Of a DNA stretch of 64,000 bases, positions 7,609 through 49,283 are shown piece after piece. Source of the stretch: Bispira polyomma. Its lineage: Eukaryota. Location of the stretch: the NCBI GenBank assembly GCA_965649765.1, contig OZ287751.1:76136001-76200000 (forward strand), given 5' to 3'. Within the stretch, counting starts at the first letter, position 1, and the number at the start of each line of letters is the position of its first letter. Below the pieces are notes generated by a model. That model saw nothing but the letters and a program-made list of their open reading frames with translations, had not been told where the DNA came from and searched no databases. Both the position numbers and the translations under genes were made by a program.

Positions 7609-7609
7609 G

Positions 7610-9117: not shown

Positions 9118-9148
<31 letters not shown>

Positions 9149-13878: not shown

Positions 13879-14299
13879 TACTTGTACTTTTGATTGTAAC
13901 CTGTTATTGTACACTTGTATGCAAGTATATATATATATATATAAATGATCAGGATTCACATATGTAGTGACAACATATTCATGATAGTAAACCTATATCC
14001 AGGCTGTTTAAATCATTTCTATCAAATTTATTTTATTACTTTCTATCATTTAGTTTTTTTTTGTGTGTGTTTTTTGGTATGTCTTCTGTTTTAGTGTGTC
14101 TTGTAACCTGCGTTGTTTTTTTTGCCTTTTCCATTGCAAGAAATTAATGGCTAAGATTAATGTATGTGTTGTGTTGACTGGGTTAACCATTTTGGTTGAA
14201 CTTGAAAGAAAGCAGTACGGAATGATTTATTTTGAAATGTATCGTGGATGGGGTATATTTTTTGTAGAGAGTTTTTATCAAAACCATCATAACAAATAT

Positions 14300-20538: not shown

Positions 20539-21217
20539 CTATTTCTTATGCTTTCTACATGTGCTCAAACTAGTATATTTAAGATCAAACAGTTGATTGT
20601 AAAATTCATACTCAAGCTGAATGTCTTTCCTTTGCATTAGCATATTTTTAGCCTCATTTGACACATTTACCCTTGTTGTACTTTTGTTAGGTTTTTTAGA
20701 AACTGTATGGTACATTTTCAAATCCCCTTTAAAGTACTGTGGAAACATGTATTCTACTACCTCTATGAATTGATCATAGTTTTCAAGGTAACCAATCACA
20801 GTAAAAGCGGATATGGCATTCCGTTTGGCCTGAGCTAATGCACATTCTGAAGGCATAATACACATTGGATCTTGACCACAGAAGTGTGGTATCATTGAAA
20901 ACATAAACCTTGGAACTGCACATTCTATATCTTTACTTTTCACACAGTCATTGAAGTTCATACTTTTCCTCTTTAGCCTGGAGTCCTTGGCTTGTTCAGT
21001 TAGATCACCCAATGGTGGGGCGTAAACATTATGTTCCCTGCGATAGTAATAAAAGGACACTAGCCTTTCTATCGGATCCCTAACAATATTTATATAAGAT
21101 GGGTTCATTCGGTATCCAGCTGCAGTAAAGTTGATGTAATCCAAATGACCGTAAAACAACCAGGGCTCTTTCTCATGAAGAAACTGGTTTTGTATGATAT
21201 ATTGCACACCATTTTCA
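20539..21217 (-). CDS. Sulfotransferase last coding exon
   Basis: Acceptor ttttctttcag at 21218-21220 (minus strand), open frame to the stop at 20539, with the RDPIERLVS motif. Confidence 0.9.
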
Positions 21218-24100: not shown

Positions 24101-24660
24101 AATATTTTCTGCAACTTTAAAATCAGCTGAATGTGTCACTGGAACCTAGATAGTATAATAGAACAGTGACATTTGTAATTAAATGCCAGTTCAAGGCAAG
24201 CTTTTATTAACATGAAGAAACAATGCAGAATATATTGTCACTTTAATTGAATTATTATATTATATGCAAATCACAATTAATTACTAATGTAAGATTATTA
24301 TTTCTTGTCTCCACAACAGTATGGTGGTTTACAATCTTAGACCTTGTGACATATTAAATGGTACCATGATACCAAAATTAAAAGTAAGTCATTTAATGAT
24401 ACAACAAATTACAGAAGTGTTAAGCAGTATAATAGGGAACATTTTTGATAATGGTGTACTAGATCAACATAAAAATGTCCTTAGTTCATCAAGTTTTCAA
24501 TATGGCTTTAAAAGTAAATAATCGATCACTCAATGTACCCTTTTGGTGAATGAAACAGTTCAGTACAATGCCCATAGAAAAATTTAGATTTATTGGACAG
24601 TTTATCTAATGTTATTAGATGCATCCCAGGCTTTTAACAGAGTGAATTGTCTGAAGTTAT

Positions 24661-27600: not shown

Positions 27601-28257
27601 CACCATTTTCGAGTTGAATCTTTTTTATTGTTTTTTCTACATATCGATATTTTTCTAGATTACAGAAGTATTTACTGGGTTTCTCGTTTAAATGTAAGTT
27701 CTGTACCCTAGATCTTATCATATGGCTATTCATTTGGGACTCTCTTAAACATTGTAATTCTTCTTTTTTACTTTTCATGGATTCTAAAGATTCAACTGTT
27801 TCCATGTTTTCTAAAATCTCAATCTCAACAGTCAGCCTCTTTTCAATTTGCAGTTTTTCCCTTTTAATTTTAGTTGCAAATTTGATTGTATCTCCTCTAA
27901 TTCTTAGCAAAAGCATTTCTAAGAACATGTCATCGGATATTGTAAATTTAATATCGCTATCTGCAATTGAAGCTAAGTTGCTTAAATTATATACAGGTAA
28001 TGCATATTGTTTTTTTATTTGTACAATAGAATCATTTATCATTCTTAGATAGTCGGGATTTTTTAAGTGACTGCAATTAAGTCTCCAAACTCCTTTACCT
28101 TTTTCAAAATTATTAAGCCTGATATCCACGTTTACTCTTGAATGGTCACTCCGGTACCCCGGCTTTATATTACAACACTGAGTCAAGTCAGTTAAGGTGT
28201 TTGAAACTAAGAAGTAATCTAGTCGTGCCTGTTTTACTGGATTCCTCCTTCGCCAAG
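24661..28257 (-). mobile_element. Young 5'-truncated L1/Tx1-clade LINE with poly(A) tail and 14-bp target-site duplication
   Basis: TSD ttgtctgaagttat at 24647-24660 and 28258-28271; T-run at 24660-24678; frame open from the truncation point (WRRRNPVKQARLDYFLVS) to the stop at 25034. Confidence 0.95.
25034..28186 (-). CDS. L1/Tx1 ORF2 (end of endonuclease, RT, CCHC zinc finger), 1050 aa, N-terminally truncated
   Basis: SDHS, KTPGIDGLP, NWRPISL, LIDFEKAFDSV, GCKQGDPIAPYLF, QFADDTT, CRSCHSYPETLLHLLVLC. Confidence 0.93.
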   Translation of the reverse strand: MTQCCNIKPGYRSDHSRVNVDIRLNNFEKGKGVWRLNCSHLKNPDYLRMINDSIVQIKKQYALPVYNLSNLASIADSDIKFTISDDMFLEMLLLRIRGDTIKFATKIKREKLQIEKRLTVEIEILENMETVESLESMKSKKEELQCLRESQMNSHMIRSRVQNLHLNEKPSKYFCNLEKYRYVEKTIKKIQLENGDTVTSQKEILDQVRNFYAKLFANREKDLQDLNWEGLIDAKNKLSLGEASKLEGPLTLKELSLALKNMKNNKTPGIDGLPADFYKIFWSRLKYFILRALNHCYLKGSLPISLRQTIISCLPKGNKPRDQLKNWRPISLISVLYKVTSSAIASRLKELLLKLIAKAQTGFIKGRFIGEGTRLIYDIMNHIQYKNINTLLMLIDFEKAFDSVSWKFMYQTLEQFRFGKSFIEWIKLFNKDIKATILQAGVLSDFINIERGCKQGDPIAPYLFILCAQVLFELIQINKDIVGIIVGNEEFKITQFADDTTLIMDGSESSLLAALNTLEVFGSVSGLKMNTSKTKLVWIGRKRFTKEKMKTNYKFDWDAVEFSLLGIEFCVDLDEIPELNYPKALCKIDETLKNWRKRTITPLGKITVIKTLAISKLNHLFMVSPIPSEKFLKQLETKFYKFLWDDQPDKIKRVNITQTYRDGGLKMINIGHFIKALKCTWIRRPIRSEDCQWVKLFENTHCSLKKLMDFGPHWSVKLYEKTKNSFWREIFQMWNFIYCTIPLKTNLDKLSTPLWYNTRLKNAKLYKELWYNKGITQICDLVDFSTNKILTKEEIESKYNFSITNFLDYFQVRSIIQEFTKCTKLKTLAVFQRPFIPHHIRFLLQQEKGCKNIYNILNEQENVGKFKKEWNKDLETVIDELTWKRIFRACFNSIKNNQLIWFQYRVLYRIVGTNKLLGQMAISDSTMCRSCHSYPETLLHLLVLCENAKTLWEKLKRWIAVKVNKIMCITPIEIILGHINTDNNFHPINTLLVTTKHYIFTCAIKATLPNLIELQRRLKTNYEEQYYLSIELDRQSQFQQNWAVFANLFT

Positions 28258-29089
28258 TTGTCTGAAGTTATGATAAAGGTATATTTTCCCTCACAGTCAG
28301 ATTTCTTTTACAGTTATATCCCAATTCATTTTATATTTAGTTTCAAACCTAATTAATACGATGGGGGTCATGTGTTACTGATAGTTTTATCGTGAAAAAT
28401 GGTGTAAACACGGCGGAGTTCTATCCCCGATATTATTCTGTTCATATTTGAATCAAATAATACTTCGAACACAATGAAGTCTGTTTTATAGTGTTACATT
28501 GTTAATATTTTTATGGGTACCCTTTGTTATACTGATGACTGCTCGATTTTAGCTCAAACTCTTGATAGTCTTAAAAGAATGCTGTATATTGTGTCAGAAT
28601 TTAGGAAACAATTGAATGTAGGTTTAATCCCATCAAAAGCCAGTTAGTTGTTTTCAATAAGTATAAAAGTGATCCTGTAAACACAATTTTTGACAATGTG
28701 AAATATCATCTGTTGATGCAGCAAACCACTTGGGTCACCTTATTGGATTAATTAGTAACAATTGTCATATACTACAGGTAAACAGACTTTATTAATAAAG
28801 TTAATTTTCTTGTGGCGAATTTCAATAAATGTTCAGTGAACATGAAGTACAATTTGTGGGGTCGTGGGACTTTTCTAGAAGTTATGTTGATAGTTTCTGC
28901 AAGTCATGGAGAATATGTGTGCGAAACATGCTTGATGTAAACAAATGAGCACATGGTGTTTATTTACCAGTAATAGTGGATGTTGTTCCTGTTGAAGCCC
29001 AGCTGCACAGGAAATTTGAAAAGTTCACTAATTCATTATTGAAATCTGAGAACCCTTTCACTTGATTATGTATGCAGTTCGGGTTGCTC

Positions 29090-30940
29090 GTGGAGCTGCT
29101 GTCTTAATAAAAAACAAAAACAATTTTGAATATAAATTAAAGAGTATCCAAAAGGACTTAGCTGTAAACTTATTGGTGATAGATCTAGATATTGACAACA
29201 TATATGTTATGCTGTTCAATATTTATGCTCGAAATTCTGATAATCCTACTTTTTTTCTAAAATATGGAAGAATATATACACAGCAGTAATGAAACATATG
29301 TGATGATTTGTGGGGATTTTAACTTGGTCTTGGATCCTACTTTAGACTCGCATAACTATATTAGCAGTAACAAAATAAATCCAGGGAGATCTTATATCGA
29401 CATACCTTCTTATAACATGTGTTTATATAATGTATATTTTAATAGAAAGAGACAAATATATTAAAATGTATTACTATAGCCAATAGAAAATTCAAGATTA
29501 CCAAAAATGCTGATGCAAGTACACTAATACTTGATGGATTGGAAAGATCTGTGCAAACATCACTCAATATATTCGAAATTTTTGACAACATGTCTAAACC
29601 CAAAGCGGTGTGGATTGGAAGAAAAAGACATTTAAAAGATAAACTGTGTCTAACTTATATCCTAGATTGGAATAATAAAGAACTTACTCTCTTAGGGTTT
29701 CACTTTACAGTAGATATTCAAAATATTCCTGAAATTAATTATGAAAATGCATTAATCAAAATAAAAAAAACAATGAAGAAATGGGGGAGAAAAAAGTTGT
29801 GTCACATTTTTCTCTTTCACTTCCGTACCCAAACAGTAAGACACTAAATGAAAATAATACACTTCTAAATAAATTTTTGTGGAATGGGAAACCACATAAA
29901 ATTAAAATATCTATTATTTCCGAGGACTACTTGGAAGGTGGTCTTCAGATGATTAATGTAGAAAATTTCATAAAAGCTTTGAAAAGTACATGGATCAGGA
30001 GACTTCAGGAGACAAGCCTGAACATAGAATATGCAATAAAATTTAAAGTCTTAGTCTCTCTAGTCAGCCAATTTTTTTATATTGTATTAGGTTGGTGTAA
30101 GATATTATATAACAAAACTACCAATCAATTCTGGAAAGAAATCTTGAGTAAATGGTTTAGTGTAAGTGATAAAATAGACATAAAAACAAATACTTAAATT
30201 GTAACTTTACCTCTTTGGTACAATATAATACTTGGAACCTTAAGTATGTGTAAATTTCAATGGTATAATAAGGGTATATGTGTTGTATGAGCTGTATTAA
30301 ATATAATAGTCATATTATGCCACAGGACAACCTTTAATTAAAATATCAGCTAGGAAAGGTCAATTTTCTGTATTATTTTTAAATGCATAGTAAAATAGCC
30401 ACTTTTATTAAAAAAGACAAATAGACAAATGTTTACGACACATAAAGCCATGCTTTCCAAATCAGTTTTTCATTTTGTTAACTAATGAGAAAGGATGCAA
30501 AGATGTTTATACTCTACTAAATAAGAGTTTGGCAGATAGTGATTTTAAAACTGAATGCTCAGTTGTGAAACAGCTATGACAAGAACTAAAATCCTGGTTA
30601 TTTAATTTAACAGATATACCTTTAGATATCAATCCTTGCCTCATAATATTTGGGTATTTCAAAAATGATATACTGGCATTACAGAAAATACTTAACAGCA
30701 CATATGAAGAGCATCTCCTATTATCAAAGTTTGTAATTAAGGAACATACTTTTACAATGCACTGGTGTCAACTCGAAATTCTGTTTACAAATAATATTTA
30801 ACCATAAAATTGCATTGTGTACAGTTATTGCATTTATTTTTCCTTTGTAAAATTTATGTTGTTCATACAGGCCATCTTGTGCTATTATTGTCACATGTAT
30901 GCGGCTTTTATGAAATTATTGTAAATTGAAAAAAAAATAT
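29090..30940 (+). mobile_element. L1/Tx1-clade LINE, multiply deleted remnant
   Basis: GAAVLI, NIYARNSDNP, ICGDFNLVLDP, VWIGRKR, KFLWNGKP, GGLQMINVENFIKALKSTWIRR; related to the element at 24661-28257 but on the opposite strand. Confidence 0.85.
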
Positions 30941-31378
30941 GCAGTCAGCATTAATGTGCAGTAAATCAAATGTATGTATATTTAACAGTATATATATAAA
31001 AAGGTACCTTTACCAATCAGACATTTAATGAAAAGAGTTTATTGTAAAGCTGCTAACATTTAGTGAAAAAGAATTGTTATGAATTAAAAATTGTAAATGT
31101 ATTCTATCAATAAGAAAACATATATTTTATGAGTGACAATAATAGGTTTTTACATATGAAGATTATAATTCCATGCTTGATTATATTTTGTGTGAAAGAA
31201 ATGTAATTATCTAATTTTACAACTATAGACATAGAAATACTTTATTATTATTGTATACTCCATAAAATAAATAAATACTTGAGGTGTATTGTTATCTATT
31301 CCAACACAAACTTCATAGAAATGCTGCCGATTCCCAAGTGGTTTGCAGTGAAGAATCTTGACTTTCACCCAACACAAA

Positions 31379-31779
31379 AACTGCCCATCGTGATATGACC
31401 TGTACAATATACAATGTTAAAGTGATCCCAATCAACCAATGCTACATTTACAAAATAGGAACCTACTTTGCCTATTTGAACAATCAATAGAACTGATAAA
31501 ACTAAGTTTTTAAGCACAGTTTTTCAATGTGATGTGAATGTGACAGATGTGTTTTAGAGAAATATGGAAAATCTGTCAAACTGCCCATCGTGATATGACC
31601 TGTACAATATACAATGTTAAAGTGACCTCAATCAATCAATGCTACATTTACACAATAGGAACCTACTTTGCCTATTTGAATAATCAACAGAATTGACAAA
31701 ACTAAGTTTTTAAACACAGTTTTCCAATGTGGTGTGAATGTGACAGATGTGTTTTACAGGAATATGGAAAATATGTCAA
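31379..31779. repeat. Tandem duplication, 200-bp unit x2
   Basis: aactgcccatcgtgatatgacctgtacaat...aatatggaaaat(c/a)tgtcaa repeats at 31379 and 31579 with few differences. Confidence 0.9.
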
Positions 31780-33809
31780 TGCGCTTAAAGTATCAAATCT
31801 CCAGGATCGTCCTATCCACTATTTCTTTATCTTTATCAATCTGTATCAATCCCAGATCCTCTGTATTCCTAAATAATTGAATAATTGTGTATTTCCTAGG
31901 CCGGTGTAAAATATGTAGGGGGTGTAAAATATAGCAAGGGGGTGTAAAATTAACACCGGAGTTGTAGTTTATTTAATTCTATACCAGCAGCATTAATACT
32001 AATGTGGTGATTTCTTCATTTTCTTAAAATGATGACTGCAAGATATGGAGCTTCTGTCTGCGTAGTGTCACAATATTGTTTAAAGCAGATGTAGAAATCG
32101 ATTTCAGTGACATACAGTAAGTCTGCTAAGAATACAAAAGCTCAACCAATACTGGCTTAAACAAAAAAATTGTATGGAAAATTTAATATATATTGTCAGC
32201 CATTCATTACCCCCGCCAAGGGAACATATGTTTTGTAAATGAAGGAAAGAAAGCTATTAAATTTTACTGAAGCACATAACTAGGATAAGGCACCACAGCA
32301 ATAAAACGTGAACAACTTTGCTGCAGCAGTGTATAAAAAACTACAACAACTATTTTGACAAGCTTTTGTGGAGGTTAAATTTTAGTTGCTAAAAGTGAAA
32401 AAATGCCTGTCCAACATTACGCAAGAACTATTGAACAGAACAAATCTTTTTGGATTGCCAGAATATGGGCCAAGAGAGAAACCATTACATTGTAGTGGAA
32501 TGTATTGCCAAAACATGCATATTAGGGCTTAAAAGTGAAAATCCTTTATTTTTACCCGTACACTTATTGGTTTTTTTAAAACACCCAAAGACATGACATA
32601 TTTTTAGTGATTTCTCCAAAGCTAATTGCAGTGTAGTGTGGTGCTGGGACCAGTCTAAACAATCAATATATGTTGTCTTGTTTCTATTTTTTCTAATGTC
32701 GTGTCATATAGTCAGCTGTCTGTAAGACCCTTAAGGCTATTAGAAACTGGATGTTAATATTTATATTGTAAAATACCATTGCACTGAAATTATATTTTAA
32801 CATGCGACACAGAAAATATATTCTTATCTATTTGATTCTATTATATCCTCCTACTATGGCCTGCTTATTACTCAGGCCTGCTTATTAGCTCACTTTTACT
32901 ATGATTAAACGGCCTAGCCCATAACGTTGCCACAGTATTTCTCTATATAAATAATCTTCATTTTCCATTATAAATTGCAATTTCAACACCCCCTAATAGC
33001 ACTAATCATAAGTATAAGTTTAGCACATATTATTTCTCTTCACCAGAATCACCCAAACAACATCAATACACATAGTACAAGTCTGGATATGTCACCATCA
33101 TGAACAATTTTATGATTTCTATTCTGGGTTTTTGGGTGCTCGAATAGTTTTGCTTATAAACTAAGCATGTGGTTAACTATTTATGCATTTATGCTCATAC
33201 TAACTTGCCTTCAACCTGTACAGATTATTTATAATATATTGTGTAAATTATGGCTAAAAGTTTTAAATAGATTTTTTTTTGTTGTAAAATAGATATGAAA
33301 AGAAATTAAATTTGGAAGAGTGGTTATGGCTTTGTACAATTAAATATTCATTATAATAGAAGTTTAAATTATAGCGATTCTACTGTTTATCTTTGTCGGA
33401 CACACAAATATATACAGGCTTTCTAAATGCGATATAGAAATCTGGTATATTTTGTTTCATACCTCCTTCTTATGGTGACTAAGGAAATGTCGTTTCTAAA
33501 GATTTTAAAGCTCATACATACAAAACATGTGCAGAGTCAGTTTAATAGAGTTTATATTTAAAAACTGCATTCTAAAAATGTTAAATAGGGCTCTAGAAAT
33601 TTGTAGCACCTTCGGTATTTGAAAAGGCAGATGTAATTGATTTTCATTATGGACACGCCCATTTGACCTTGATTGAGGGGTTCCAGGTCAAATTTGGCAT
33701 GCAAAAAAATTCCTAGCCTATAATATTCTTCAAGTTGTTTCACATCCCAAACCTCTAGGACCAATAATAAGACCAATATAAGTGGATTTTAATGAATTTA
33801 TGTCAAGTA

Positions 33810-33895
33810 ACCACTGTATAAATGATGATTTGAACATAGATAGGGACAAATGATCAGAATGTGATTAGATCTCTATGTGCTGATATTACAGTGGT
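33810..33895 (+). ncRNA. SNORD74: Box C/D snoRNA, SNORD74/U74-like, subfamily B copy 1
   Basis: Terminal stem accactgta/tacagtggt; C box ATGATGA 33822-28; guide TAGATAGGGACA followed by D' ATGA; D box CTGA 33880-83. Confidence 0.85.
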
Positions 33896-34391
33896 ACTTT
33901 CTACAAGTTTCTGGTGCAGAGAATATATTTGGCATGTTTGTAAATACCCGGCCCCAGATATTCATACCCAAGATTGGTCATACCAGTTTTCCCTTAGTAG
34001 TGTTTTTGTTTTTTTTATTAAATAAGTTATCTTTCATGTCATAATTGTTTAAGTGAAAAATGTTCTTCAGTAATTTCTTAAATTGCCCTTTGAAGGTCAT
34101 GAATGTTAATTCTTACTTGAGAAAATGTTTGGGATGGACTCTTTGAAAATGTGGTTTTGAATATTTTTACTCTAAAACAGTACCGTCTGGAAATTTCAAA
34201 CTTAAGGATGACAGCTCAGTTTTTGGCACCAAGTAAATAGAATTGGTTAAGATCTTGGCTGTGTTTACAAAAATTTCTTATTTTCAAATTTTTTGTCTCA
34301 ACTGATTTGATTACCTGCATATATTGTTTCTATAGATCTGGTTGACTGGGACTGAGAAAATTTTAAGAATGGTTTCTTGATGTATAAATGA

Positions 34392-34480
34392 TTCCAATAG
34401 CAGAATGATGAGTTTTACAGAGATAGGGACATATTATTGGTTACCCCTGATTTTATCTCTCTGTACTGACGCTTCCGGAA
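34392..34480 (+). ncRNA. SNORD74: Box C/D snoRNA, SNORD74-like, subfamily A copy 1 (D' box mutated to ATTA)
   Basis: ttcc..agc/gct..ggaa stem; C box 34405-11; guide AGATAGGGACA; D box 34466-69. Confidence 0.75.
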
Positions 34481-35177
34481 AACTTTACAAATGGTGTGTG
34501 ATTGTTTGCAAATTAGAAAGAGGTTTTATGAAAAGTGCTCATCAAGCAGAATCCTGTATATTTTGTTTCACACGGAACAGTCGGTCATAAAATCTCTTGC
34601 AAACAATGACACCATTTGTAAAAAACGAAAGTAAATGCCATTTTAAAAGATTTAAAAGTTTGTTCATACGAAATATGCACATAGTAATGACTCTGTTGGG
34701 ATCAAGTGCAGATTTCCCCCAGCAGACACCATGATGGAATATAAAGTCTGTCAATGTACACTGGTGTAGGAATTTTAAGGACTGTATTCTAAAAATGTTA
34801 ATATGGTCCTTGATGTTTGTAGCCATATTTATAGCACCTTGGGTATTTAAAAATTCTGATCAGTGATCACTCCCTGTTACTAACTTCGTTTGTAATTATT
34901 CTATAGAAATTTCGGAGATATGGGCTTTTAATGAGAGCATGGAGTTTGTATTTAAGTTTCACCAAGTCGGTTTGAATTTGCGGAATTTTTAAAGTTTAGT
35001 ATACTGCATATTTAGTGTCATTCATCACAATTATTCAAGTAATTTCCTCAGTTCAAGTAAAGTTCAAAAGTACTTCATGTAACTGTTCCAACTTATAAGT
35101 TAACAGTTGCTACAGAAAAAAATCAAAGTACAATGTAAATTTGGACTAAGCCAGTTAATGCAGTTATCTGTGTGATG

Positions 35178-35263
35178 ACCACTGTAAAAATGATGATTTA
35201 TACATAGATAGGGACAAATGATCAGAACGTGATTAGATCTCTATGTGCTGATATTACAGTGGT
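35178..35263 (+). ncRNA. SNORD74: Box C/D snoRNA, SNORD74-like, subfamily B copy 2
   Basis: accactgta/tacagtggt stem; C box 35190-96; TAGATAGGGACA-A-ATGA; D box 35248-51. Confidence 0.85.
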
Positions 35264-35747
35264 ACTTTCTACAAGTTTCTGGGGCAAAGAATATTTCAAG
35301 ACTGTTTGAAAATACACGCCCCCAAATATTAATAGCCAAGATTGGTCATACTTCCGGAATTTAAAGTTTCTCTTTTAGTAGTGTTTCTATTTTATTAAAT
35401 AAGTCCTCTTTTATGTCATAATTGTTTCAATTAAAAAAGTGTTAATTTTAAAATTTCGCTAAACACAATCTCTTTAAAGGTTTGGGATGAACTTTTTCAG
35501 GATATGATTTTGAATACTTTCATTGTAAAACAGTCTGTCTGGAAATGTTAAACATAAGAATTACAAGTCAATGTTTGGCACCTACTAAATAGAATTGGTT
35601 AAGATCTTGGCTATATTTCTAATTCTAAAATTTTGGATCTTAACAGATTTGATTGGCTGCATATAATGTTACAATATAGACCTTGTTGATTAAGACTAAT
35701 GAAATTTTAAGAACCCTTTTTAAAAATTGTGCATTTTTACATTAAAT

Positions 35748-35840
35748 GATTCCAATAGCAGAATGATGAGTTCTACAGAGATAGGGACATATGATTGGTT
35801 ACCACTGATTTTATCTCTCTGTACTGACGCTTCTGGAATC
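35748..35840 (+). ncRNA. SNORD74: Box C/D snoRNA, SNORD74-like, subfamily A copy 2
   Basis: gattcca..agc/gct..tggaatc stem; C box 35763-69; AGATAGGGACA-T-ATGA; D box 35824-27. Confidence 0.85.
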
Positions 35841-35981
35841 CTTGATAAAATGGTGTGATTGTTCGCAGATTAAAGCTGTTTTATGAAAGGTGCACATGAA
35901 CAGATTTCAATATATTTAGTTTCAAACCTCACTCGCCTGGTGACTTAGGAAATGCCATTTGTAAAGATTTAAAAGCTCGTA

Positions 35982-36946
35982 CAGTAGAATCTGTAAGTCG
36001 AATGTGCAATATCCACCATAATTACTTTGAATTATGGTAAATTCGAATTATATATTGGGGAGGGGGGATCTGTCAGAAGTTGTATGGCCATATTAACACT
36101 CTTGCGGTAAGTATGGGCGATAATAGAATAGTGATAAAGTATCCCTAAATGTGATAACAATACAAAAGATTAAATATAAAACCTGTTATTGCCTAAAAAT
36201 AAGGCATTTAACATTGAAATTGTATATTATCTTTGCAAGAGTCCACCGTATTTACACATGTATTATGTTTAGGTTGACGACAGATATGCACTCGTAAAAT
36301 TAACTATTTTAAAGTACAAACTTCTTCCTTAGTTTTAAGGAATCTAGTAAGTACATTCCAATTTCAATTTTAAAAGGCCCCTTTTTCCTTAAAAATCTTT
36401 AAATGTACATCAGTTTCACTCACAAGGTTGTCTCAGTGATTTATACAAGCAAATTGCACTTAGTGGACATAAGAATAGTTATAGCTCGAAGGCGGTAATT
36501 TATGGAAATACGATGAAAGGCGGCCTGTGTCATATAAAATAGGATTAATTTAAATTGTTTTTGGGGTAAGTTAATGGTGTATTTTGATGGAGGTTATGGG
36601 TCAGACATTTAAATAACCTTAATTGCAAATAATGACACCTTCACTAAATGCTGTCTTTAACAATAGCCATATACAAATATGTGGCCCACGAGGACATAAA
36701 ATAGCAATAGATGTAATCCCTTGTCAAACAACACGGTCTTTCCATGGCTCTGATTCGAGTAATCCATTTTTTCCATGCTAAACTTAACCTTAAAGTCAGC
36801 AATTTGCTTCGAATAATGACTTTAAGGGTAATTCGAATGTTCGAGGATTTCCTAAAGATTAAGCTATAAATTGTTGGGGATCTGAAATTCGTTCGAATTT
36901 CGGCTACTTTCGAGTATTGTCCATTCGAGTTTGACCAAATCCACTG
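35982..36946. mobile_element. Tc1/mariner(pogo)-type non-autonomous element inserted in the snoRNA repeat unit
   Basis: TA|cagtagaatc..tcgaatg on the left and cattcga..aatccactg|TA on the right; the flanks rejoin to match the uninterrupted unit at ~34650-34740. Confidence 0.65.
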
Positions 36947-37329
36947 TACATACAAAATATGTGCTTAGTAATGACTCTTTTGGGATAAACTGCAGAATTT
37001 CCCAAGGAAATGCCATAATTGAACTTTACCTATGGCACCCAATGTATATTGTATCCACCTGAGGTAAAAAGTAAGTTATGGTTGGTGATGTTAGTAAATC
37101 ACCTCATTTCTTTCTGAATTTTATATCAACAAAAACTAGGACCAATAATAAGAGATAAAAGGGCCTTTTACTAAGGACACCCATTTGACCTTAAAAGATG
37201 AATCCGAGGCCAAATCTGTTGTGCAAAAAGAGTCCTAGCCCATGCTTTTCTAGGAGTTGTTTCACATCCAAAACCTCTAGGACCAATAATAAGACCAATA
37301 TAAGTGGATTTTAATGATTTTATGTCAAG

Positions 37330-37416
37330 ACCACTGTATAAATGATGATTTATACATAGATAGGGACAAATGATCAGAATGTTGATTAGATCTCCATGTG
37401 CTGATATTACAGTGGT
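37330..37416 (+). ncRNA. SNORD74: Box C/D snoRNA, SNORD74-like, subfamily B copy 3
   Basis: accactgta/tacagtggt stem; C box 37342-48; same guide and D'; D box 37401-04. Confidence 0.85.
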
Positions 37417-38001
37417 ACTTTCTACAAGTTTCTGGTGCAGAGAATATATTTGAAATGTTTGTAAATACATGGCCCCAGATATTCATACCCAATATTGATC
37501 ATACTAGTTTTCCCTCAGTGGTGTTTGTTTTTCATTAAATAAGTTCTCTTTCATGTCATAATTGTTTAAGTGGAAATTTTTTTTAGTAATTTTAACATAA
37601 TCTAAACGGTATTTTTTTTAACTTTTGTAGGATTTTAACTCTTAAAAATATGTTGGGATGGACTCTTGAGAATATGGTTTGACTATTTTCACTGTAAAAA
37701 TATTGGGGGTGGGTTGTTAAAGCACTAACGTGTTGGCTATAATGATAGATTATCCTTTTATGTTTCATATATTCAAGTTTCATCAAGTTAATTGGAAAGT
37801 TTGCAAAAATTTGCATCCGGCATATCGCTTGTCAAAAACTGCTATAATCCTCTTATACCGCCTAAAAAAATAAAACTAATTACTGCGAATTGAACGCATC
37901 CTCCATCCTACCGTCTCACCAATGTTCTGAAGGATTAGGGTCAAAAGTGCTGAATGTAACTGTGTTGCAAGTTAATATAAGCTACAGTCTGTACAGACAC
38001 G

Positions 38002-38082
38002 ACCACTGTTTAAATGATGAGGTAAACATAGATAGGGACAAATGATAAAGTGATTCGATGTCTGTGCTGATATCACAGTGGT
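38002..38082 (+). ncRNA. SNORD74: Box C/D snoRNA, SNORD74-like, subfamily B copy 4
   Basis: accactgt/acagtggt stem; C box 38014-20; same guide; D box 38067-70; ends ~117 nt before the acceptor at 38198-99. Confidence 0.85.
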
Positions 38083-38857
38083 ACTTTCTTGTACAAAGAA
38101 TGTCTCTTTAGATGGTATCGTATTGTAAACTAATATACAGCAAAGAAGTAGTGGCTCCTTTGAGCATTAATGTCAAAACCTGTGATGTGTATTTTGCAGT
38201 AGTCAAAGACAGCATCATTGCCATAGCAACAGACGGCAGTGTGAATGTAGTCCTGTAAGTATTGCGACCATTGTATTAAGATTCAACTTATATGCTGAGC
38301 ATTTGTGCAGTCAACTATAGAGTTTTTGGTAAGGTCGGTGGTAGAGTTAGTTTGTACTTTTAATTATGACCTTAATTTGTTAAACCGTGAACAGTTTCCT
38401 CCATCTACCTAATATGGGAATTCTATTGTATGAATCAAATAAAAATTACATATAACTTGACGCTTTTGTAAATTAAATAATGATTTTGTGGTATTAGCCT
38501 ATATGATTCTATTTTACATTGATCTTGTTAAAAAAAGTTAAAAAATATCGGTATGAAAGCAGTAAGTGCCAAGTTAGTCTCCTGTTTGTTGTATGTGTTC
38601 TATTATTGTACATTTTAGCCATTTAATAGTAAGGACAATATTTTAGATTTTTAATGTATCGTCTTTACAGGAAGTTGCATTAAAGATTCAGTTCCTGAGA
38701 TTAGTTCATAGCTTCTGTGATCATTCAGAGTAAGTTAATAATTTTTTCTGTAAAAAAATGAAAGTATACAGTAAAGTTAAATATTACCTCCATGTATAGT
38801 ATTCTCTACAAATTTTGCAATCATTATCTACTTTCTGATTCAACCGTATCAACATTT

Positions 38858-39050
38858 GGCCCATTGGTTAGATGTGCTCACAAATGTGGATTTGAATCTT
38901 GTTTGTTCCTTCATGTGGGAAAGTTTGTGAGGTACTTGATGTAGGTCGGTGGTTTACAGTTGATTCAGCACTGGGTTCTTCCACCTTTAAATATGACCCT
39001 AAAATCTGACCTATGCTGTTAAAAGTGACACAAAAACCCAACTAAAAAAA
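38858..39050 (+). mobile_element. tRNA-derived SINE
   Basis: A-box-like tggcccattgg, B-box-like gatttgaatc, core atgtgggaaagttt..ggtcggtggttt, tail gttaaaagtg..aaacccaactaaaa; same family as 44754. Confidence 0.7.
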
Positions 39051-39715
39051 TCAACACGTGTATTGACAGATTGCATGGCTTAATATTTCGCAGTCTACAT
39101 TTAAACGTATATATTTTGGTGTGTATAATATTTTTTAATCTGTTTTTGACCAATATGAAGAGAAAATGTACAGCTACAGAAATATGTCTTTAGTGCAATA
39201 ATCATTCATTTTGTCTTTCCAGGTTCAAACATTTGTTGCTTTCTAAAAGTGAATTAAATGAAATCAAAAGAATAAATGGTGAGTTTGTTACTATTGTAAC
39301 TTCATTGTTACTGTATTAAAAGTGCTATAAATTGGTGAGATGGGGACAAAATTATCAAGTAACTAACATAGTTTATTTGTTTTTGTCTTGTCTAAGATAT
39401 GTTAGAAATTGAGAATTTCATTGATATGAAGACAAATACCAAGTTTGTATGTGTCCGTTTTCTTGTTCTACATTTCAACAGCTAAAGCTGGTTCTTGTCT
39501 TAATATTAAAGATGTTATCGAAATTTCTAATAAAGATTGAGTTTATTTCTATGTACTTTAAGAAATGTAAGAGTTTTCGTGCTGTACATTTAAACAGCTA
39601 AAGCGGATCCCTGCCTTCAAGTGGACAATATTGATGGGGTGAACAGAAGCCTCATGTGTAAGGGTAACAAAGGTCTGCTCTCCAAGATTGTAGCCTACAG
39701 CTTCCACTTTCAGGT

Positions 39716-39870
39716 GAGTGGTTAGAAGCGGCTGCTTCACAATGTGGGATTGAATCCCTATCCTGTTTGTTACTTCATGTGGAAAATTTGTCAGGTGCTT
39801 GCCATAGAATGGTGGTTACTTACACCATTAAAACTGGCCATCCTGATATGACCAAGCTTTTTAAAAACAC
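39716..39870 (+). mobile_element. tRNA-derived SINE abutting a splice donor
   Basis: gagtggttagaagcg..caatgtgggattgaatccc..catgtggaaaatttgtcagg..aaactggcca. Confidence 0.65.
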
Positions 39871-40019
39871 AATTAATTTAAAATGACTGTCCTAGTGTTT
39901 TACCTTATTTGTTAATAATGGACAGCTCCTGGTATAATTGACTCGCTGCATTATATTTACAGTACTGCAGGATCTAATAAGTGCCATTAAAGCCTAGTGG
40001 CCGTAATAGTGGGTAACAA

Positions 40020-40260
40020 TGAATTGTATTGTATTTTACATCACCCTATTGATGCGAGGCATCTTCTAAAGCGCAACAACAGAATCAATTCACCAATAGA
40101 GAAAATTTTTTAAACATAGCCAATGTCGTAAAGAAGGATGTTGGGGTTTACAGGCAGGGAATTAAAGGGCCTAAATGACTTTAAAGAGATGGGTTTTAAG
40201 GGTTTTTTGCAAAACCCAGAAAGTGTTTTTAGTGATCTGAGCTATGATGAATATCCAAGG
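40020..40260 (-). mobile_element. L2/CR1 LINE 3' tail fragment
   Basis: Reverse complement of the gatgcct.gcatcaat..(tacaa)n tail family. Confidence 0.65.
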
Positions 40261-40592
40261 TAAATAAATGCACTGAGTAATGAGTATAAGCTCCAATACT
40301 AAATTTTTTTTCAGGTTCTGGTTAGCGCAAGTGGTGGAGAGCTACCTCCGAGGTAGCACGTCTTACTGTGGTCTTCTTGTTACGGAGAGGCCTTCTGCAG
40401 CACATCGCCAGTAATATCGTAGACCACGACATTCGACCCAAAGAGATCCTACAAAGCAGCTTTGACCTCCTGGGAGAACTCTGTAAATTCAACGCCGAGG
40501 CCTTCAGAGCCTTCAACAAAGTGCTCAACTCCACAGAAAGGGTAGGTGGTACTGAATGAGAATTGTTTGTTTTTTTGGGGGGCTGGTGTGTT

Positions 40593-40632
40593 GATTCCAA
40601 TAGCAGAATGAGGAGTTTTTTTTTACAGAGAT
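40593..40632 (+). pseudogene. Truncated subfamily A snoRNA copy
   Basis: gattccaatagcagaatgaggagtttt..tacagagat and then homology stops; C box mutated; guide and D box lost. Confidence 0.7.
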
Positions 40633-40776
40633 GGTTGGATAAATCTGTTTGTTACAAATAGCCTACCTCCACGCATTCGGAAATTTATTGTATTTTTCGT
40701 AATTTGATTCAGTGGCTTTTGTCTAATCCTGATAACAAACAGGGACGAAAAACTAATCTCCTTGACAAAGGTGTTA

Positions 40777-40867
40777 ATTCTAATAGCAGAATGATGAGTT
40801 TTACAGAGATAGGGACATACGATTGGTTACCACTGATTTCATCTCTCTGTACTGATGCTACTAGAAT
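40777..40867 (+). ncRNA. SNORD74: Box C/D snoRNA, SNORD74-like, subfamily A (intronic; D' reads ACGA)
   Basis: attcta.tagca/tgcta.tagaat stem; C box 40791-97; AGATAGGGACA; D box 40852-55. Confidence 0.8.
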
Positions 40868-41605
40868 CCATTATATATTGTTTCACATATTCTGGTGAAG
40901 AGTCTAAATTGCGTGAACACTTTTGATTGACTTCTAGCATTGACCTTTGGGGGAATTTTACTAAAAATATGGAGTTTAATCTTTGAGTCCCTATTATATT
41001 TGCCATACAAACTGATATGAAAACTTGTGACTGTGGTTGCCCTTTGTGGAATTTTGACTTAAAATTCTGACCTCCATGTATTGCACATGGTCAACACATT
41101 CTTGGCCTTTACAGTTAAAGTTCGATATTTATATATGGCGTACTAACAGATGCGACCTTAACATTGTTGGAGGTCAAAAAACCATTGTGAGTGGATGTTT
41201 GACTTTGGTATTTTGCCTTGTCCTTGTAACTTGCATCTGTTTTGTTTTTTTTCAAAGGTTTAGTCATAAATGAAATAATAATGACAATTTTTTTACTAAG
41301 AATGCCACATTTAATTAACAATGGTTCAGGTCCATCTTCAATTCAGCTGCTGATGAGGTAGATAAGTAGTACTGTAGCATTGATATCTTCTACATCAAAT
41401 TGTACAAATTACTTCGCCTCGTACATAATCTGGTTATTTAGAGTTTCAAGAAGTTAATTTATTAGTAGGGCCGCTTGAACCGGTAGTGATTCTTGATATA
41501 ATATTTTTAAGTGAAGCCCAAGTGTAACCATAGTACTCATACAAGTTCAGATTTATAAGGCTGCAAGTGTGTCCATGACTTTATGCCTTTCTATATAAGA
41601 GGGTA

Positions 41606-41688
41606 CCAGCAGCAAAATGATGTTTTACAGAGATAGGGACATATGATTGATTAACACTGATTTCATCTCTCTGTACTGACGCTTCTGG
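41606..41688 (+). ncRNA. SNORD74: Box C/D snoRNA, SNORD74-like, subfamily A (intronic; C box degenerate ATGATGT)
   Basis: ccag.agc/gct.ctgg stem; AGATAGGGACA-T-ATGA; D box 41676-79. Confidence 0.65.
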
Positions 41689-41970
41689 AATCCTTTAAAA
41701 ATGGTGGAATTTAATGAATGGAATCTGGTATATTTTGTTACTTTGGTCCTCTGTTGACTTGAGGACAAAAATGCCATTTTGAAACATTTCATATATTGTA
41801 AAAATTATAAATATTTTGATGTTCTGAAGGAATATGAGACGTGTATGAAAATGTAAACCTTTTCACTGGCCGGTTGTAAAGTTTTAGTAGTGGTAATCGC
41901 GATACCAGTCATTAACAGCACTACCAAATGTTATTACAGTAGTCATATTTCAAGGATCCTGCTGGGTTTA

Positions 41971-43162
41971 TTGTATCCACCGATCAGGTGGATACTTTGG
42001 TTTAGTGTTGGCTACGCCGCCGCCGTAGAGAGATTTTACTCGTTAACACTCTCAGCGGAAAACTAGACCAGCTAGCTTCACTAAATTTGCAGGATATCTT
42101 CATTGGGAGGTAAGCTTCTCTGCGACTGAAATTAGCCTCATTCTGAAAAACAAGATGGCCGCCATCGGCATTACTTTGAAAATTATCCACCTTTTTCTAC
42201 TGGCTGGTTCTCGTAACTAGAAGGTTAAATCTCTTCATAGGTGATATGTATAAAAGATATATATGTCCTCTGCAAGCATGCAGACATTTGACCTTAAAGC
42301 TCTTCATTGAAGGTCATCCACGAAGTGCCAAAGTACCCCACATAGCGAACTTTAAAGGTGCCTATATCTCCTATTATTGGTCCTAGAGGTTTGGTATGTG
42401 AAGCCTACCTATAGGAAATCATGGGCTAGGAATCTTCTGATGTGGTCAGGTTTGACCTTGGATCCCTCATTCATTGTCAAACAAGGTATCCAAACCTAAA
42501 AGTGCTTATAATTTGTTTATTATTGGTCCTAGAGGTTTGGCATGTGAAGCCTACCTATAGGAAATCATGGGCTGGAAATCGTCTGATGTGGTCAGGTTTG
42601 ACCTTGGACCCTTCATTTAAGGTCAAACAAGGTATCCAAACTTAAAAGTGCTTTTAACTCGCATATTATTGGTCCTAGAGGTTTGCATTGTGAAACCAAC
42701 TTATAGGTAATCATGGGCTGGGAATCTTCTGTTGTGGTCAAATTTGACCTTGGGCCCCTCCATCAAGGTCATACGAGGGTAGTTAAACTTAAAAGTCCTA
42801 ATAACTCGCTCATTATTGGTCCTACAGTTTTGAGATGTAAAAGCAACCTATAGGAAATCATGGGCTGGTAGTCTTCTGATGTGGTCAGATTTGACCTTGG
42901 GCCCCTCCATCAAGGTCAAATGACAAAAGCCAAATTTAAAAGTGCTTATAACTGGCTTATTGGTCCTACAGGTTTCAAATGTAAAACCAACTTCCAGATA
43001 ATCATGGGCTGAGAATATTTTGATGTGGTCAGATTTGACCTTGAGCCCCTCCTTTAAGGTCAGACGAGGGTAGCCATAGCTTGGGTACTTCCTACCTAGG
43101 GTGCTCTGTCTTTCTGGTGGATACAAATATGCATCGGTTTTCCCATGCACTAGGTCTAGTTT
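41971..43162 (+). mobile_element. Complete Helentron-associated element (HINE-like) with ~5 tandem ~146-bp units
   Basis: 5' subTIR ttgtatccacc with adjacent inverted copy ggtggatac; (gcc)n; units at ~42376, 42522, 42668, 42815 and 42959; 3' subTIR ggtggatacaa (43116-26); hairpin tgcatcgg..ccatgca; ctagttt end in T-rich flank. Confidence 0.85.
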
Positions 43163-44231
43163 TACTTGTTGTTTTTTTTTTTACTTTCTTCGCCTTCTAG
43201 TTCCCAATACATCAAAGCTAAATGTAGTGTTGGTTAAATTCAAAATTAAACATCACATTTTTTGTGTCTGCAAAATACCTTAGGAAATTTCTAATCTCAG
43301 TCTTCTTCGACACATATATTCATTGAAACTGGTTAAATGTTAAATTATTTCCAATCCAGCACGTTAAATTTCATTTTGTTAACTTTCAAAAGTATATTTC
43401 ACAGCAATAAAATCAAAAGAAGAAATAGGGATTTAAAATAGTACACTATTAAGAATCGTGGTACTTTGTTTTTATCCTGTTTTAGGTGAATGTAAATTTA
43501 AGCTTCCTGAAGCATGATGTTAACTACATAACATGTTGGGGTTTCTTTTACAGCTAGAGAAGTTTTTGGAAGTTGTCAACCGTAATCTGGTCGACTCCAA
43601 CATGTTCATCCGCTCTCTGATTCTGTCGTACGAGCATTTTAACAACAATCAATCTGAGTTCAAAGGTCAGTATGTGTGTATAACTAACATTCAGTTCTGG
43701 ACCAGCATTCTGTTTGAAGGTACTTTCATGAAAGACATACTGTAAATAACTTATAGGATGTAATTTTAATGGAGTAAAGTTACAGTTAAAAAAAGTCTGT
43801 TTGGATTCCATAATACAACCCAAAAAAATACACCCAGATATTCCCAATCAAACAAACATGCCTCGAGGGATGGGAAGTAGTCAAAAAGGAGGCATATTCC
43901 TTTTCATTAAATAAGCAAAGTAAATCTAGGCCCAAAGGAGTTTGCACATTATTTAATGAAGAAGCAATCTTTATGTAGTGATAATCTCTTCCACAAGTAT
44001 TGCTATATGCACTGTGTAGGGAATATGTGTACATTGTGGATGTGAAGAAAATTCTTTTAAAAGATAAGTGGGAAAAATCAATTCTTCTATTCATCTAGTT
44101 ACTGTGTTTATCTGGACGATCAGCCTTGGCCTTTTAGCTCATACATAATGTGGTGAATTTTTATGAGACTAAAATGCAGTTGTTTACATATATATGACAT
44201 AATTATTGTAAGAAGAAGAATTTGGAGTTGT

Positions 44232-44321
44232 TGCCACTGTAAAAAAATGATGATTACTACATAGATAGGGACAGATGAAAACACATGATTTCATTCTCTA
44301 TGTCCTGATTCTGCAGTGGCA
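44232..44321 (+). ncRNA. SNORD74: Box C/D snoRNA, SNORD74-like, subfamily B copy 5 (intronic)
   Basis: tgccactgta/tgcagtggca stem; C box 44247-53; TAGATAGGGACA-G-ATGA; D box 44305-08. Confidence 0.85.
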
Positions 44322-44972: not shown

Positions 44973-47900
44973 TGAAATTCAAGACAGGCCGAGAAGAAAT
45001 CAATGTTTTTGAGTTCACATGACACTCTTGTGAGGACTATTGTAGTTGTAATCCATTGTACTCGTGTACTGTATCCAATAACTATGAAAACTTGTGTATT
45101 TTAGACTATTCCAACAGAGAAAGTCCCCTGCTGATGCATGTAGCAAACTTTGAGACGCAGATGACATACCTTCAGAAACTCATTCATGTTATCAATGTCC
45201 AGAATCTCACACAAGTAAGTTGTACAGGCTGATGTCAGTGAGGATTATTTATTGTTTGCCCCATATACAAGGGTATATCATCGGTATAGCTTGCTTGGGT
45301 TTGGTTTTCTGCCCGATCTGGTCAATAAAGATGGCCGCCCAATTGTAACAATGCCTAAACAGGTTCTGCTCATTTAAAGGAAAGGATTGCAGATATTGTC
45401 ATGAGATTTAATACATATACATGGGTTTATCACGGGTATAGCTTGCTTGGGAGTTGATTTCTGTCTCTGACATTGTCTGAACAATGGAGCATTCACACAT
45501 GATTATCTGTACATTTTTTAACCAAAGAACCCTCTCCTGTTCCTATATCTCACAGCCTGCACAGAAATATGTCCCTTTTGCGCTAATTTGTTTTTGTCTG
45601 TGTTCATTGGTTGGTTGGTTGATCACTATGATTTCATTCATATTAGAAATATTACAAAGTCAAGGGGTTTGTACAAATAGAAGAAGTCCTTGGCAGTTTC
45701 ATTTCCACTGTGCAAGGCCTTGTAAAGTGCTTGTTTTTCACAGTTCTTGAATTTAACTTGTGGCATCAAAATCTGTATAAACCTGGCATTAAATAATCTA
45801 TCTTTTGGTTGAGCTTGGGGAGAAGGTGCCTTATGTTGAGCCAAATACAAAATTTCTGGTTTTGTATGTTACATAATAAGGTCGGTATGTTAATTAAAAT
45901 GTAATTATCTGTGTATTAGTTCAATTGAAGCTTAATCGGGGACACATGATTTGATTTATTTCAGGAGAATGTCAGTTGTCTCAACACCACTCTAGTCTTC
46001 CTGATGTTTGCAAACCGCAACTCAAGTATACCCAGGTGAGTGATACCATTATCACTGGAGTAAGAAGAGTAATGGCAGACAGAAAAACTAGTACTATTCA
46101 TACATGAAGGGACAAGAAAGTAAACTGTTACATTACAGCATCTTATCACTTCTCTATATCTATGTGTAATCATACAACAATTGAACCTCTAATAGAATCT
46201 GGATGCAACCTATTAACCGAAGACTTGTCTCTATTGATTTAGTTTGAATTAGTGCCACTATCACTTACGTTTTAGGAAACTGGTTTTTGTTTGCAAGTTA
46301 TCGACGGAACACCGGTAAATTTCGTTTTTACTTATAAAAAAGTACTTTTCTACGGCAAATGCCATTCGACTGTATTTCCTGTTTTCCTGTCAAAACACCA
46401 AGAAAGTTAACATGCACTACACAAACACAAAAAATACTAAAGGAAAGTTATTAAAGTGGTAAAATATGACCAAATCATGGGAAATTATATATTTTACTGC
46501 AGAAATGCAAGTTTCTTAAAAAAACCGGTATCATTAGATATGAACCGTATGTTGTTTGTTTTGCGTATAGCGAAACAAACTGCTTTACCGATATTCCGTT
46601 AACACTAGTTTGAATTTCACAGCGCTTTTAGCATGCTTGTGTCTATCACGACGGAGAGTGATGGAAGGAATCGGGGCAGGGTAGTTGCTACTGTATTACT
46701 AGAGTGCATAAATTCCCCAACACACATAGTTGGACTCTGTATTCTGTGTATTTGTCGGGTACCTACACTATCTGATGACCACCCTATGTACATACTCCTA
46801 ATACAACATGATTTTGGCTCGGGTGCACGAGTTACCCGTACATATACTCTCTGTATTAACCAGGTATATAAATAGTCCAGTACATGCATTCGTATCAGTG
46901 TTGCTAGTGGTGTGCTGGTATCCCGCATTTGATTTCATTTTGGACAAATTTGTGATCAGCGCTAGGATAAAGTGTTCAGAACCGGCTGATGATAATATTA
47001 ATATTTTACTATTTTGAATGCAGATGCAGACGTAATTTTATGAAACAAAATGGCACTATTATGCACAGATTTGTGTATGAGTTTAGAAAGTTTTTGAGAT
47101 TGCATTTCCTGTTGAATATTATAGCTCACGTACACCTGTTATACACTTCATCAGGAGACTGACATGAAACATAATTTTTAGAATTTCATCTTACGATTAC
47201 ACCAGCAAGTCTTTACTGTGTTTTACCCAGATACCTACAAAGTCTGACTTTTCTTTGTTACAGTACCTCTATACACATAGTCTCACTTTTAACACTTTTA
47301 CTCTCATTGTATTTTACCCAGGTACCTCCAGGGACTGATGACAACCAAGTCTCCGCGTGGTGACTGTATCATGGACATGACACTGATGAGGAACTTCAGG
47401 GACTTGCTGATCTTCTGGCAGGATCACTACCTACATAAAGACGAGGACTGCAGTGCACTGGAAAAGGTACACCACATCAAATCATACTCCAACTTCTACA
47501 AAATATAATATTCAGTTAATGAAGACATTTGCTCTCTCCCAATATTTTATAAACCTCCATCATCCGAACAATATGTTCCTCTCCCGATATGTTCGGAGAA
47601 AGAGGTTCCTACTATTTCAATTTCAATTATTAAATGGCAATTATATTTAAGTATTCCCTTAAAAAAGGCACAAAAACCTTGTTGCAATTAGTAGAGTGAA
47701 ATTTCTGTGGAATTTTCATGCAGCTAAAATTTCTACTAGTACTGCACAGAAAGGTTTACAGACTTATAACACTGATTCTTCATAGCCAGATAAAATGTTA
47801 TTTGAGTTCGATCAAAAGTTGTAACATTTATCTCGTCATTTGCAGAGTTCGCGTATACAGTTTGACTTCTGGAAAGCTACGGTCTCCAAACTTGTTGAGG

Positions 47901-49283
47901 ACAACCGAGAACTGAAAACAGCCATAGTTCATTACCTAGAACCAGATTACGAGCGTGTTAGCTGATTGACCAAGACACGTCATGTGACTAACTACTCAGC
48001 CAGTGCTTTCAGCGTCCCACCTCAATAAAACGTGATTGGTACGAGAGACTTTCGTGGAGAAAGAAAGTGGAAATCTTGAGTTAAACGAGGAGTCAAATTT
48101 GCAAGAGTTGCATCGACTGATTTGTATTGGTCCTCAATCTTCCAAAGATAGTTACAAAAACCGTTGCCTTAAGTATTTATTTAGTTAGTATTAATTGGTA
48201 CGTATACCAAGAAAAGGTTACCAGGAAGAAAACCAAAAGTTGTTGGTCTACACATATATATTATTGCAAGTAATGCAGCTTTACCCTGACTGTGAAACAG
48301 GCATCATTACACATATCTTTGTGACTTGTGGAAGCAAAGACCGCTCACTTTTAGTGGATTAAAAAAAACAAACAGTTTTATGAAAAGTGATTTTAGTTCT
48401 GCGGCCTAACGATGGGTGAAGTCTTCCAAGAGTGGTTTTAATCAAACTGTGGCGAAACAAAAAAAAAAAAAAAAACTTTTTATTTGTAATACTTAATGTA
48501 AAAAAAAAATAGAATTTTTAGAAATGTCTGAGTTTGCACATTCAAATTGCTTTTCTAGGTTCATGCCAAAGATCAAAGCTAGCTCAGTTGTGTTTATATT
48601 TGTGTAGATGTACATTTTATATGAACATTTGTCTTGTCAAGCATATCGATGTTTATTACTGCCAGGTTTTTAATGTATTTCTTGAATATATTTACATTCG
48701 ATATATGAACAAGAATTAAATGCAAGACAGATTAGTGGTTATGTGGACATTTTTTAAAACCTATTTATATGTAGTGGAACGTGTATGAATTTTATCGTGC
48801 TGGACAAAATATTTTAATCTGTATAGTAATTTTTTAAACCGATAGGTGTGTTTGTATTCAAAATGAATTTCTTCAGGGTAAATTATTATCAAAAATTAAA
48901 GCAAAGTCGGGGAAATTATAAAAAAAATATGCAGTCATACTAAGCTAATCCACAACCTATTATCTGGTGAAAAGTGAACAATTTTTCTTGTACTGTGATA
49001 GTTTAAAAAATGTAGTTTAAGTACTTTCCAGTTTAAGCGGTTTGTTATTATAGAGTAGACAACATAAAATTTAATTAATTAACAAATGCATTGTGCTTTA
49101 TTTGTTATTGATATTGTAGGAAATTTTTTCGTAAATGTTTTTACTCAATGAAGTTATAATATTGTTGGATTACCTTCATTTGTTATAAACATATTGTCTT
49201 TTTTTATACTTCTATTAAAATCCTGTACAAAACTGTATTTTATAGGATATGTTTTTATTTAAAACAGTATGAACAATTATTAA

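Follow-up and report, generated by a model that had tools for sequence, protein, structure and literature searches.

What does it mean when ten closely related small nucleolar RNA (snoRNA) units stand side by side on one strand of DNA? The question is raised by a stretch of 64,000 nucleotides from Bispira polyomma (GenBank assembly GCA_965649765.1, contig OZ287751.1, positions 76,136,001 to 76,200,000 of the forward strand), here called the window, in which an array of predicted box C/D snoRNA units shares one guide to ribosomal RNA (rRNA). A first interpretation made from the letters alone (the sequence-only reading) saw a local amplification of one guide, explained by dosage selection or by birth-and-death turnover. 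We consider a wider picture probable, in which the units are SNORD74-clan guides with working arrays in introns of the genes TRPC4AP and KARS1 on the same chromosome (C4), and the window array is a silent passenger on a duplicate of TRPC4AP. The snoRNA family and its function are already known; the unusual part is the presence of 9-21 conserved C/D copies within a single animal intron, seen in two species. New are the intron with 21 copies, the finding in a second species and the pseudogene character of the window copy.

Identity of the units and their rRNA target

The window array comprises nine full-length units and one truncated unit, the same count as in the sequence-only reading. From their anatomy and complementarity the units are predicted to be box C/D snoRNAs, with a C box (RUGAUGA) near the 5' end and a D box (CUGA) near the 3' end, and they share the order C box, spacer, guide, D' box, loop, C'-like box and D box. 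In the following list, the parent is the TRPC4AP gene from which the window array was duplicated, as described below.

33810-33896, + strand: unit A1, SNORD74-type C/D unit (C box 33822, guide 33838-33848, D' box 33850, D box 33880)
34390-34482, + strand: unit B1 (D' box ATTA, identical in the parent copy)
35178-35264, + strand: unit A2
35748-35840, + strand: unit B2
37330-37417, + strand: unit A3 (window-specific change at 37395 disrupts one internal-stem pair)
38002-38083, + strand: unit A4 (3-nt and 2-nt deletions relative to the parent; 130 nt upstream of the first retained exon)
about 40592-40632, + strand: truncated B-type unit (5' part only; parent counterpart truncated too)
40776-40868, + strand: unit B3 (D' box mutated to ACGA, window copy only)
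41600-41692, + strand: unit B4 (C box with a 2-nt deletion, window copy only)
44233-44321, + strand: unit A5 (divergent A-type; sole unit of its intron)

The guide element of 11 nt recurs exactly on the + strand of the window at 33838, 34421, 35206, 35779, 37358, 38030, 40807, 41631 and 44263; even with one mismatch allowed, shuffled sequence gave a mean of 0.93 matches and a maximum of 3. One base past the guide stands a D'-like box that reads, as first reported, ATGA in seven of the nine units, ATTA at 34433 and ACGA at 40819. This ATGA form is degenerate, yet almost every copy retains it, as does the second species; the C'-like box reads TGATT. All nine full units end in a CTGA D box, at a C-to-D length of 57-65 nt, and their terminal stems form duplexes of -7.7 to -18.7 kcal/mol against a background mean of -5.2, which bears out the stem noticed earlier. 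The C box, previously ascribed to every unit, is perfect in eight of nine and damaged by a 2-nt deletion in the unit with its C box at 41617; six of the nine units retain perfect boxes. The spacers had been described as divergent; the units sort instead into two subfamilies, A (five units) and B (four units).

The earlier assignment to the SNORD74/U74/snR64 type and its methylated C in 28S rRNA is supported by the Rfam layout, by pairing with the genome's own 28S and by published site tables. The target is present in the genome's 28S, where every window unit forms a perfect duplex of 11-13 bp, and the D'+5 rule selects the C at position 2603 of the genome's large-subunit (LSU) match, equivalent to human Cm3820/3841 and yeast Cm2337. 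Published work equates the U74 site Cm3820/3841 with yeast snR64 Cm2337 and places an Am site 11 nt upstream (PMC3511168; PMC8583080); in this genome the SNORD79-type guides point to an A at just that spacing, 11 nt upstream of the SNORD74 target, which matches human and Arabidopsis. By the family rule, the D'-linked guide would pair with 28S and fibrillarin would then methylate the C five bases upstream of D', which here would be LSU C2603; what is observed is the pairing.

In Rfam, nothing was found at the gathering level, and the matches consist of repeated sub-threshold hits (17.7-22.6 bits for the window units, against a gathering score of 41 for SNORD74, RF00284) to SNORD74 and its clan-mate Me28S-Cm2645, with SNORD74 the best C/D family by number of matches. 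The Rfam SNORD74 consensus likewise places the guide one base before D', in agreement with the layout given for human U74 in the sequence-only reading. We class the units as SNORD74-type guides by their predicted target, not as Rfam members. They share with SNORD74/U74 (RF00284, clan CL00069; yeast snR64, Arabidopsis snoR44, Drosophila Me28S-Cm2645) the guide position before D', the LSU target C and the box order, but differ in carrying ATGA rather than CTGA as D', in their hosts TRPC4AP and KARS1, and in their 43 copies.

The units also form an internal stem of 7 bp, one pair of which covaries as U-A, G-C and C-G across subfamilies A, B and C (0 of 500 shuffles), the three subfamilies amounting to about two independent events. 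A guide on the D-box side was sought against rRNA with only short, G-U-rich and inconsistent matches, and this segment is accounted for as the partner strand of the internal stem.

Three intronic clusters and other amplified guides

The amplification had been described as local and about ten-fold, a description that does not survive the genome-wide count. A covariance-model search of the genome found 43 copies, all on C4, all intronic and on the sense strand of their host, in three clusters: nine in the window, 13 in the parent TRPC4AP (1, 9, 2 and 1 per intron) and 21 in KARS1, the gene for lysyl-tRNA synthetase. The window array is a secondary copy. The bare 11-mer is uninformative at genome scale (863 matches versus 749 in the control), while the 11-mer combined with a C box places 38 of 39 matches inside the three clusters. 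The KARS1 copies constitute subfamily C and occupy C4:86380188-86405348 on the minus strand, within one intron of 26.6 kb that is bounded by consecutive coding exons with contiguous codons; both end copies of this array are damaged. Intronic clusters of nine in one TRPC4AP intron and of 21 in one KARS1 intron are counted here from the mapping of coding exons, between which non-coding cassette exons are possible. The sequence-only reading was right about the existence of an array, and it overlooked the host gene, its pseudogenisation and the many-per-intron layout.

The repeat-rich region in which the units lie might suggest that they are pieces of a satellite or of a dispersed transposon. This origin is refuted by the 43 covariance-model copies, every one of them intronic and in host sense orientation at only three loci, and it sits badly with the perfect rRNA complementarity and with conservation across species; we give it practically no weight.

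A further proposal, raised by the sequence-only reading, is that copy number was selected to raise the dosage of this methylation guide. In its favour, no other family checked reaches 43 copies (the others have 6 and 6), the D' box is weak, and arrays persist in two species. However, unrelated families are amplified likewise in hosts of their own: U14 (SNORD14) has six copies at C9:16399525-16407496 on the minus strand, divided four and two between consecutive introns of a gene that we take to be RPL7A, and a SNORD79-type guide has six copies at C7:8030952-8059540 on the plus strand, in an importin-7/8-like gene with at most two per intron. These six-fold amplifications indicate that snoRNA multiplication is a trait of the lineage and weaken a dosage effect specific to one site. 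Furthermore, the two contigs of one sample from the second species differ in copy number (8 versus at least 12), and nine of the 43 copies came as passengers. Dosage selection for this site is unsupported and appears to us improbable.

A TRPC4AP duplicate as carrier of the window array

The host gene of the window units, which are all intronic, is TRPC4AP, recognized by its PF12463 domain and by the names of homologues. A second TRPC4AP gene, with upstream exons and open frames intact, lies at C4:25.56-25.59 Mb, 50 Mb from the window. The window copy is a duplicate of the 3' half of this gene and lacks the exons that encode roughly the first 400 residues. The spliced genes were searched exon by exon, and the following features were found:

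16600-33438, + strand: permuted upstream block, matching C4:25646494-25659151 downstream of the parent gene, with an inserted long interspersed nuclear element (LINE); its end abuts the TRPC4AP duplicate
33439-54731, + strand: segmental duplicate of the TRPC4AP 3' half (parent C4:25570977-25592235), starting mid-intron, 95-98% identity
38200-38254, + strand: first retained TRPC4AP exon; all earlier coding exons are missing from the window
38671-38729, + strand: TRPC4AP exon
39223-39278, + strand: TRPC4AP exon
39598-39713, + strand: TRPC4AP exon, frameshifted near 39691 by a 17-nt deletion
40315-40541, + strand: TRPC4AP exon (PF12463), frameshifted near 40369 by a 5-nt deletion
43554-43665, + strand: TRPC4AP exon (PF12463)
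45103-47965, + strand: last four TRPC4AP exons, boundaries approximate

The parent is intact at the sites of both frameshifts. Public DNA runs from two samples give contigs (5.9 kb compared) that span both exon deletions gap-free, and these deletions are therefore not consensus errors. With its introns, its 5' truncation, two frameshifts and an intact parent, the window TRPC4AP presents as an unprocessed duplicated pseudogene. Its introns differ from those of the parent by 2.3% substitutions, and a deletion of 1.48 kb near 33625 cost it two units. Because the duplicate starts mid-intron and lacks the 5' exons, six of the nine units are left with no donor site upstream. Damage found only on the window side affects the C box of unit B4 (41621), the D' box of unit B3 (40820) and an internal-stem pair of unit A3 (37395), while the parent-side changes after duplication are mostly tolerated ones; these numbers are small. 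Most likely, as judged from these sequence comparisons, a recent TRPC4AP duplicate carries the window array as a passenger that is silent and beginning to decay. The window and parent arrays would then form a natural control for the decay of snoRNA copies after loss of the host promoter.

The order of the two blocks at the window is reversed (B|A) relative to C4:25.57-25.66 Mb, with the junction at 33438/33439; this is the internal junction, and the extent given for the upstream block (16600-33438) is a minimum. A B|A order is the signature of duplication via circular DNA intermediates, in which segments arranged as A-B likewise become B-A at a distant site (PMC7450558); here the internal junction alone is seen, and a displaced tandem junction would give an identical picture. 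By either of these routes, the recent order-permuted duplicate would have lost the promoter and the 5' exons.

Could the window block be a misplaced haplotype or an assembly artefact of the parent locus? A divergence of 2.3% is within the allelic range of marine invertebrates, and both loci share one chromosome. On the other hand, neither the permuted block order nor the window-specific insertions and the two frameshifts fit this explanation, and window-type and parent-type sequences are both present in the contigs of both samples. We regard an artefact as very improbable.

No snoRNA units were found in the TRPC4AP loci of Saccostrea, Argopecten, Ridgeia, Paralvinella and Owenia, and their absence from these five annelid and bivalve loci suggests that the association with TRPC4AP as host is lineage-specific. 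The exons of the parent gene show 83% identity to the closest transcript, 72% to the annelid Ridgeia and 66-68% to molluscs.

Turnover and conservation of the arrays

Birth-and-death turnover, the other explanation offered by the sequence-only reading, is supported by duplications of unit plus flank, by the truncated unit, by the subfamilies and by differing copy numbers in the second species. The copies arose via tandem duplication of unit and flank together, in blocks of up to 2.8 kb with 70-99% identity. In the KARS1 array the units are 94% identical versus 68-72% for the flanks, and parsimony changes per site amount to 0.23 in the core (boxes and guide), 0.50 in the loops and 1.85 in the flank. 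External stems of intact units reach -7 to -23 kcal/mol against the background mean of -5.2, and every intact copy keeps a strong external stem, even where the 3' splice site is as much as 25 kb away. Visual inspection of the aligned flanks revealed no conserved cryptic splice motif.

A related animal (ENA ERZ22147071) has the same KARS1 intron with 8 copies on one contig (3284-16842) and at least 12 on another (1143-16832), both from one sample and with two alternating subtypes. One of its KARS1 exons is 81% identical in protein, and the copies of this second species group together. Alignment between the two species is limited to exons (74-88%), units (79-83%) and a shared satellite, a pattern that points to selection on the unit, a persistent many-per-intron layout and continuing turnover. 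In mechanistic terms, intronic snoRNAs would multiply by local tandem duplication of unit and flank and turn over by unequal exchange, and this lineage would keep many copies per intron.

Two side observations concern the KARS1 array. Its copies are interspersed with inserted transposon-like open reading frames (ORFs), some of LINE type and some of other reverse-transcriptase types. The C-type copy at C4:86400975 has G for A in its guide, which equals the Rfam SNORD74 consensus and gives a G-U pair with the animal's own 28S.

Possible release of many copies from one intron

In animals, one snoRNA per intron is the predominant arrangement, and two per intron give rise to snoRNA-ended long non-coding RNAs (sno-lncRNAs; PMC11028025). 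Animal C/D snoRNAs mostly keep to one per intron because exonucleases trim them from debranched lariats, so that many conserved C/D snoRNAs per intron imply either endonucleolytic release or long RNAs ended by snoRNAs. Human C/D snoRNAs tend to sit some 50 nt before the branch point; where the external stem is long, assembly becomes independent of splicing (PMC5519232).

Clusters of several snoRNAs within one intron are known from rice and from Drosophila H/ACA snoRNAs, and the arrays described here resemble them in this respect; Drosophila, however, clusters H/ACA but not C/D snoRNAs, the latter keeping to one per intron (PMC3089462), whereas here one C/D family has 9 and 21 per intron. The imprinted SNORD113-116 and rat Bsr arrays are likewise large and local, and they too gain and lose C/D copies, form subfamilies and evolve in concert, but they have orphan guides and non-coding hosts in placental mammals, mostly with one copy per repeated intron (PMC11028025); the units here are aimed at a canonical rRNA site and lie together within single introns of protein-coding genes. 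The sno-lncRNAs of the Prader-Willi syndrome (PWS) region, SLERT and LNC-SNO49AB arise from two snoRNAs per intron (PMC11028025). Such RNAs may be a product here too, although they carry two end snoRNAs and the introns considered here appear to hold 9-21 copies.

The 13 copies of the intact TRPC4AP gene, together with the 21 of a single KARS1 intron, would be the working sources. Their long external stems probably permit splicing-independent assembly at a great distance from the branch point, and the release of internal copies probably begins with cleavage in the spacers and ends with exonuclease trimming; the conservation of internal copies favours such individual release. More generally, the lineage may routinely express canonical C/D snoRNAs as polycistronic intronic arrays with as many as about 20 copies, with splicing-independent assembly and endonuclease excision, a tentative proposal that we hold to be plausible without quite calling it likely. 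Within the literature searched, a plant- or yeast-like endonuclease route at such a scale is undescribed for animal C/D snoRNAs, no paper was found that names both SNORD74 and TRPC4AP, and nothing relevant was found on annelid or mollusc snoRNAs. Copy-specific single-nucleotide differences make release of internal copies, as against very long snoRNA-ended RNAs, directly testable.

Weighing of the evidence

Several observations speak against the picture of working SNORD74-type arrays and a silent window copy. Concerning identity, the window units stay below the SNORD74 gathering score, the D' box is degenerate, and pairing in the internal stem also involves the first three bases of the guide. 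Concerning the conservation of internal copies, the difference between core and loops alone is not significant (p=0.08), so that gene conversion could help to keep internal copies alike, and no endonuclease signal in the spacers is conserved between the two species. Concerning the silence of the window copy, the splice sites checked in the duplicate are retained, its exons differ from the parent by only 0.86% (9/1042) versus 2.3% in introns, and a window-side change at 40781 restores a stem pair.

The last group of observations, together with the six units of nine that have perfect boxes, would suit a window duplicate that is still transcribed as a non-coding host, frameshifted but spliced to release its snoRNAs. 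GAS5, the host of human SNORD74, would be the model. Such a host, however, would have to do without a 5' exon or donor preceding six of its nine units, as the window has none of the parental 5' exons, although a cryptic promoter may exist. Upstream of the duplicate the window showed no gene on the sense strand; the long ORFs there are those of an antisense LINE and an antisense sulfotransferase copy. At an intron divergence of 2.3%, intact splice sites are expected without selection, and two boxes are damaged in the window copy only. A GAS5-like role is, in our view, rather unlikely.

The modest core-versus-loop difference bears on another alternative, in which only the outermost intact copies matter, trimming yields a sno-lncRNA or one mature snoRNA, and the internal copies are neutral and gene-converted. 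Exonuclease trimming of introns with two snoRNAs does give sno-lncRNAs in mammals (PMC11028025), and many of the copies are near-identical recent duplicates. Yet similarity is restricted to the unit while homologous flanks drift, the end copies of the KARS1 array are precisely the damaged ones, and two interleaved subtypes with intact boxes persist in each species. We consider it unlikely, though deserving of attention, that internal copies are dispensable, and retain as probable the reading of working arrays in TRPC4AP and KARS1 with a silent passenger in the window.

Surroundings of the duplicate

The sulfotransferase ORF (PF03567) in the upstream block is uninterrupted at window positions 20542-21258 on the minus strand and was duplicated from C4:25.65 Mb; paralogues of 82-85% identity lie near 22.6-22.7 and 25.665 Mb. 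The LINE carries an open ORF2 of 1077 aa (RVT_1, zf-RVT) at 25037-28267, also on the minus strand, and its insertion apparently followed the duplication. A tandem satellite with a period of 146/147 bp occupies 11984-12968 and 42352-43076 of the window and is scattered through the parent locus and other introns as well.

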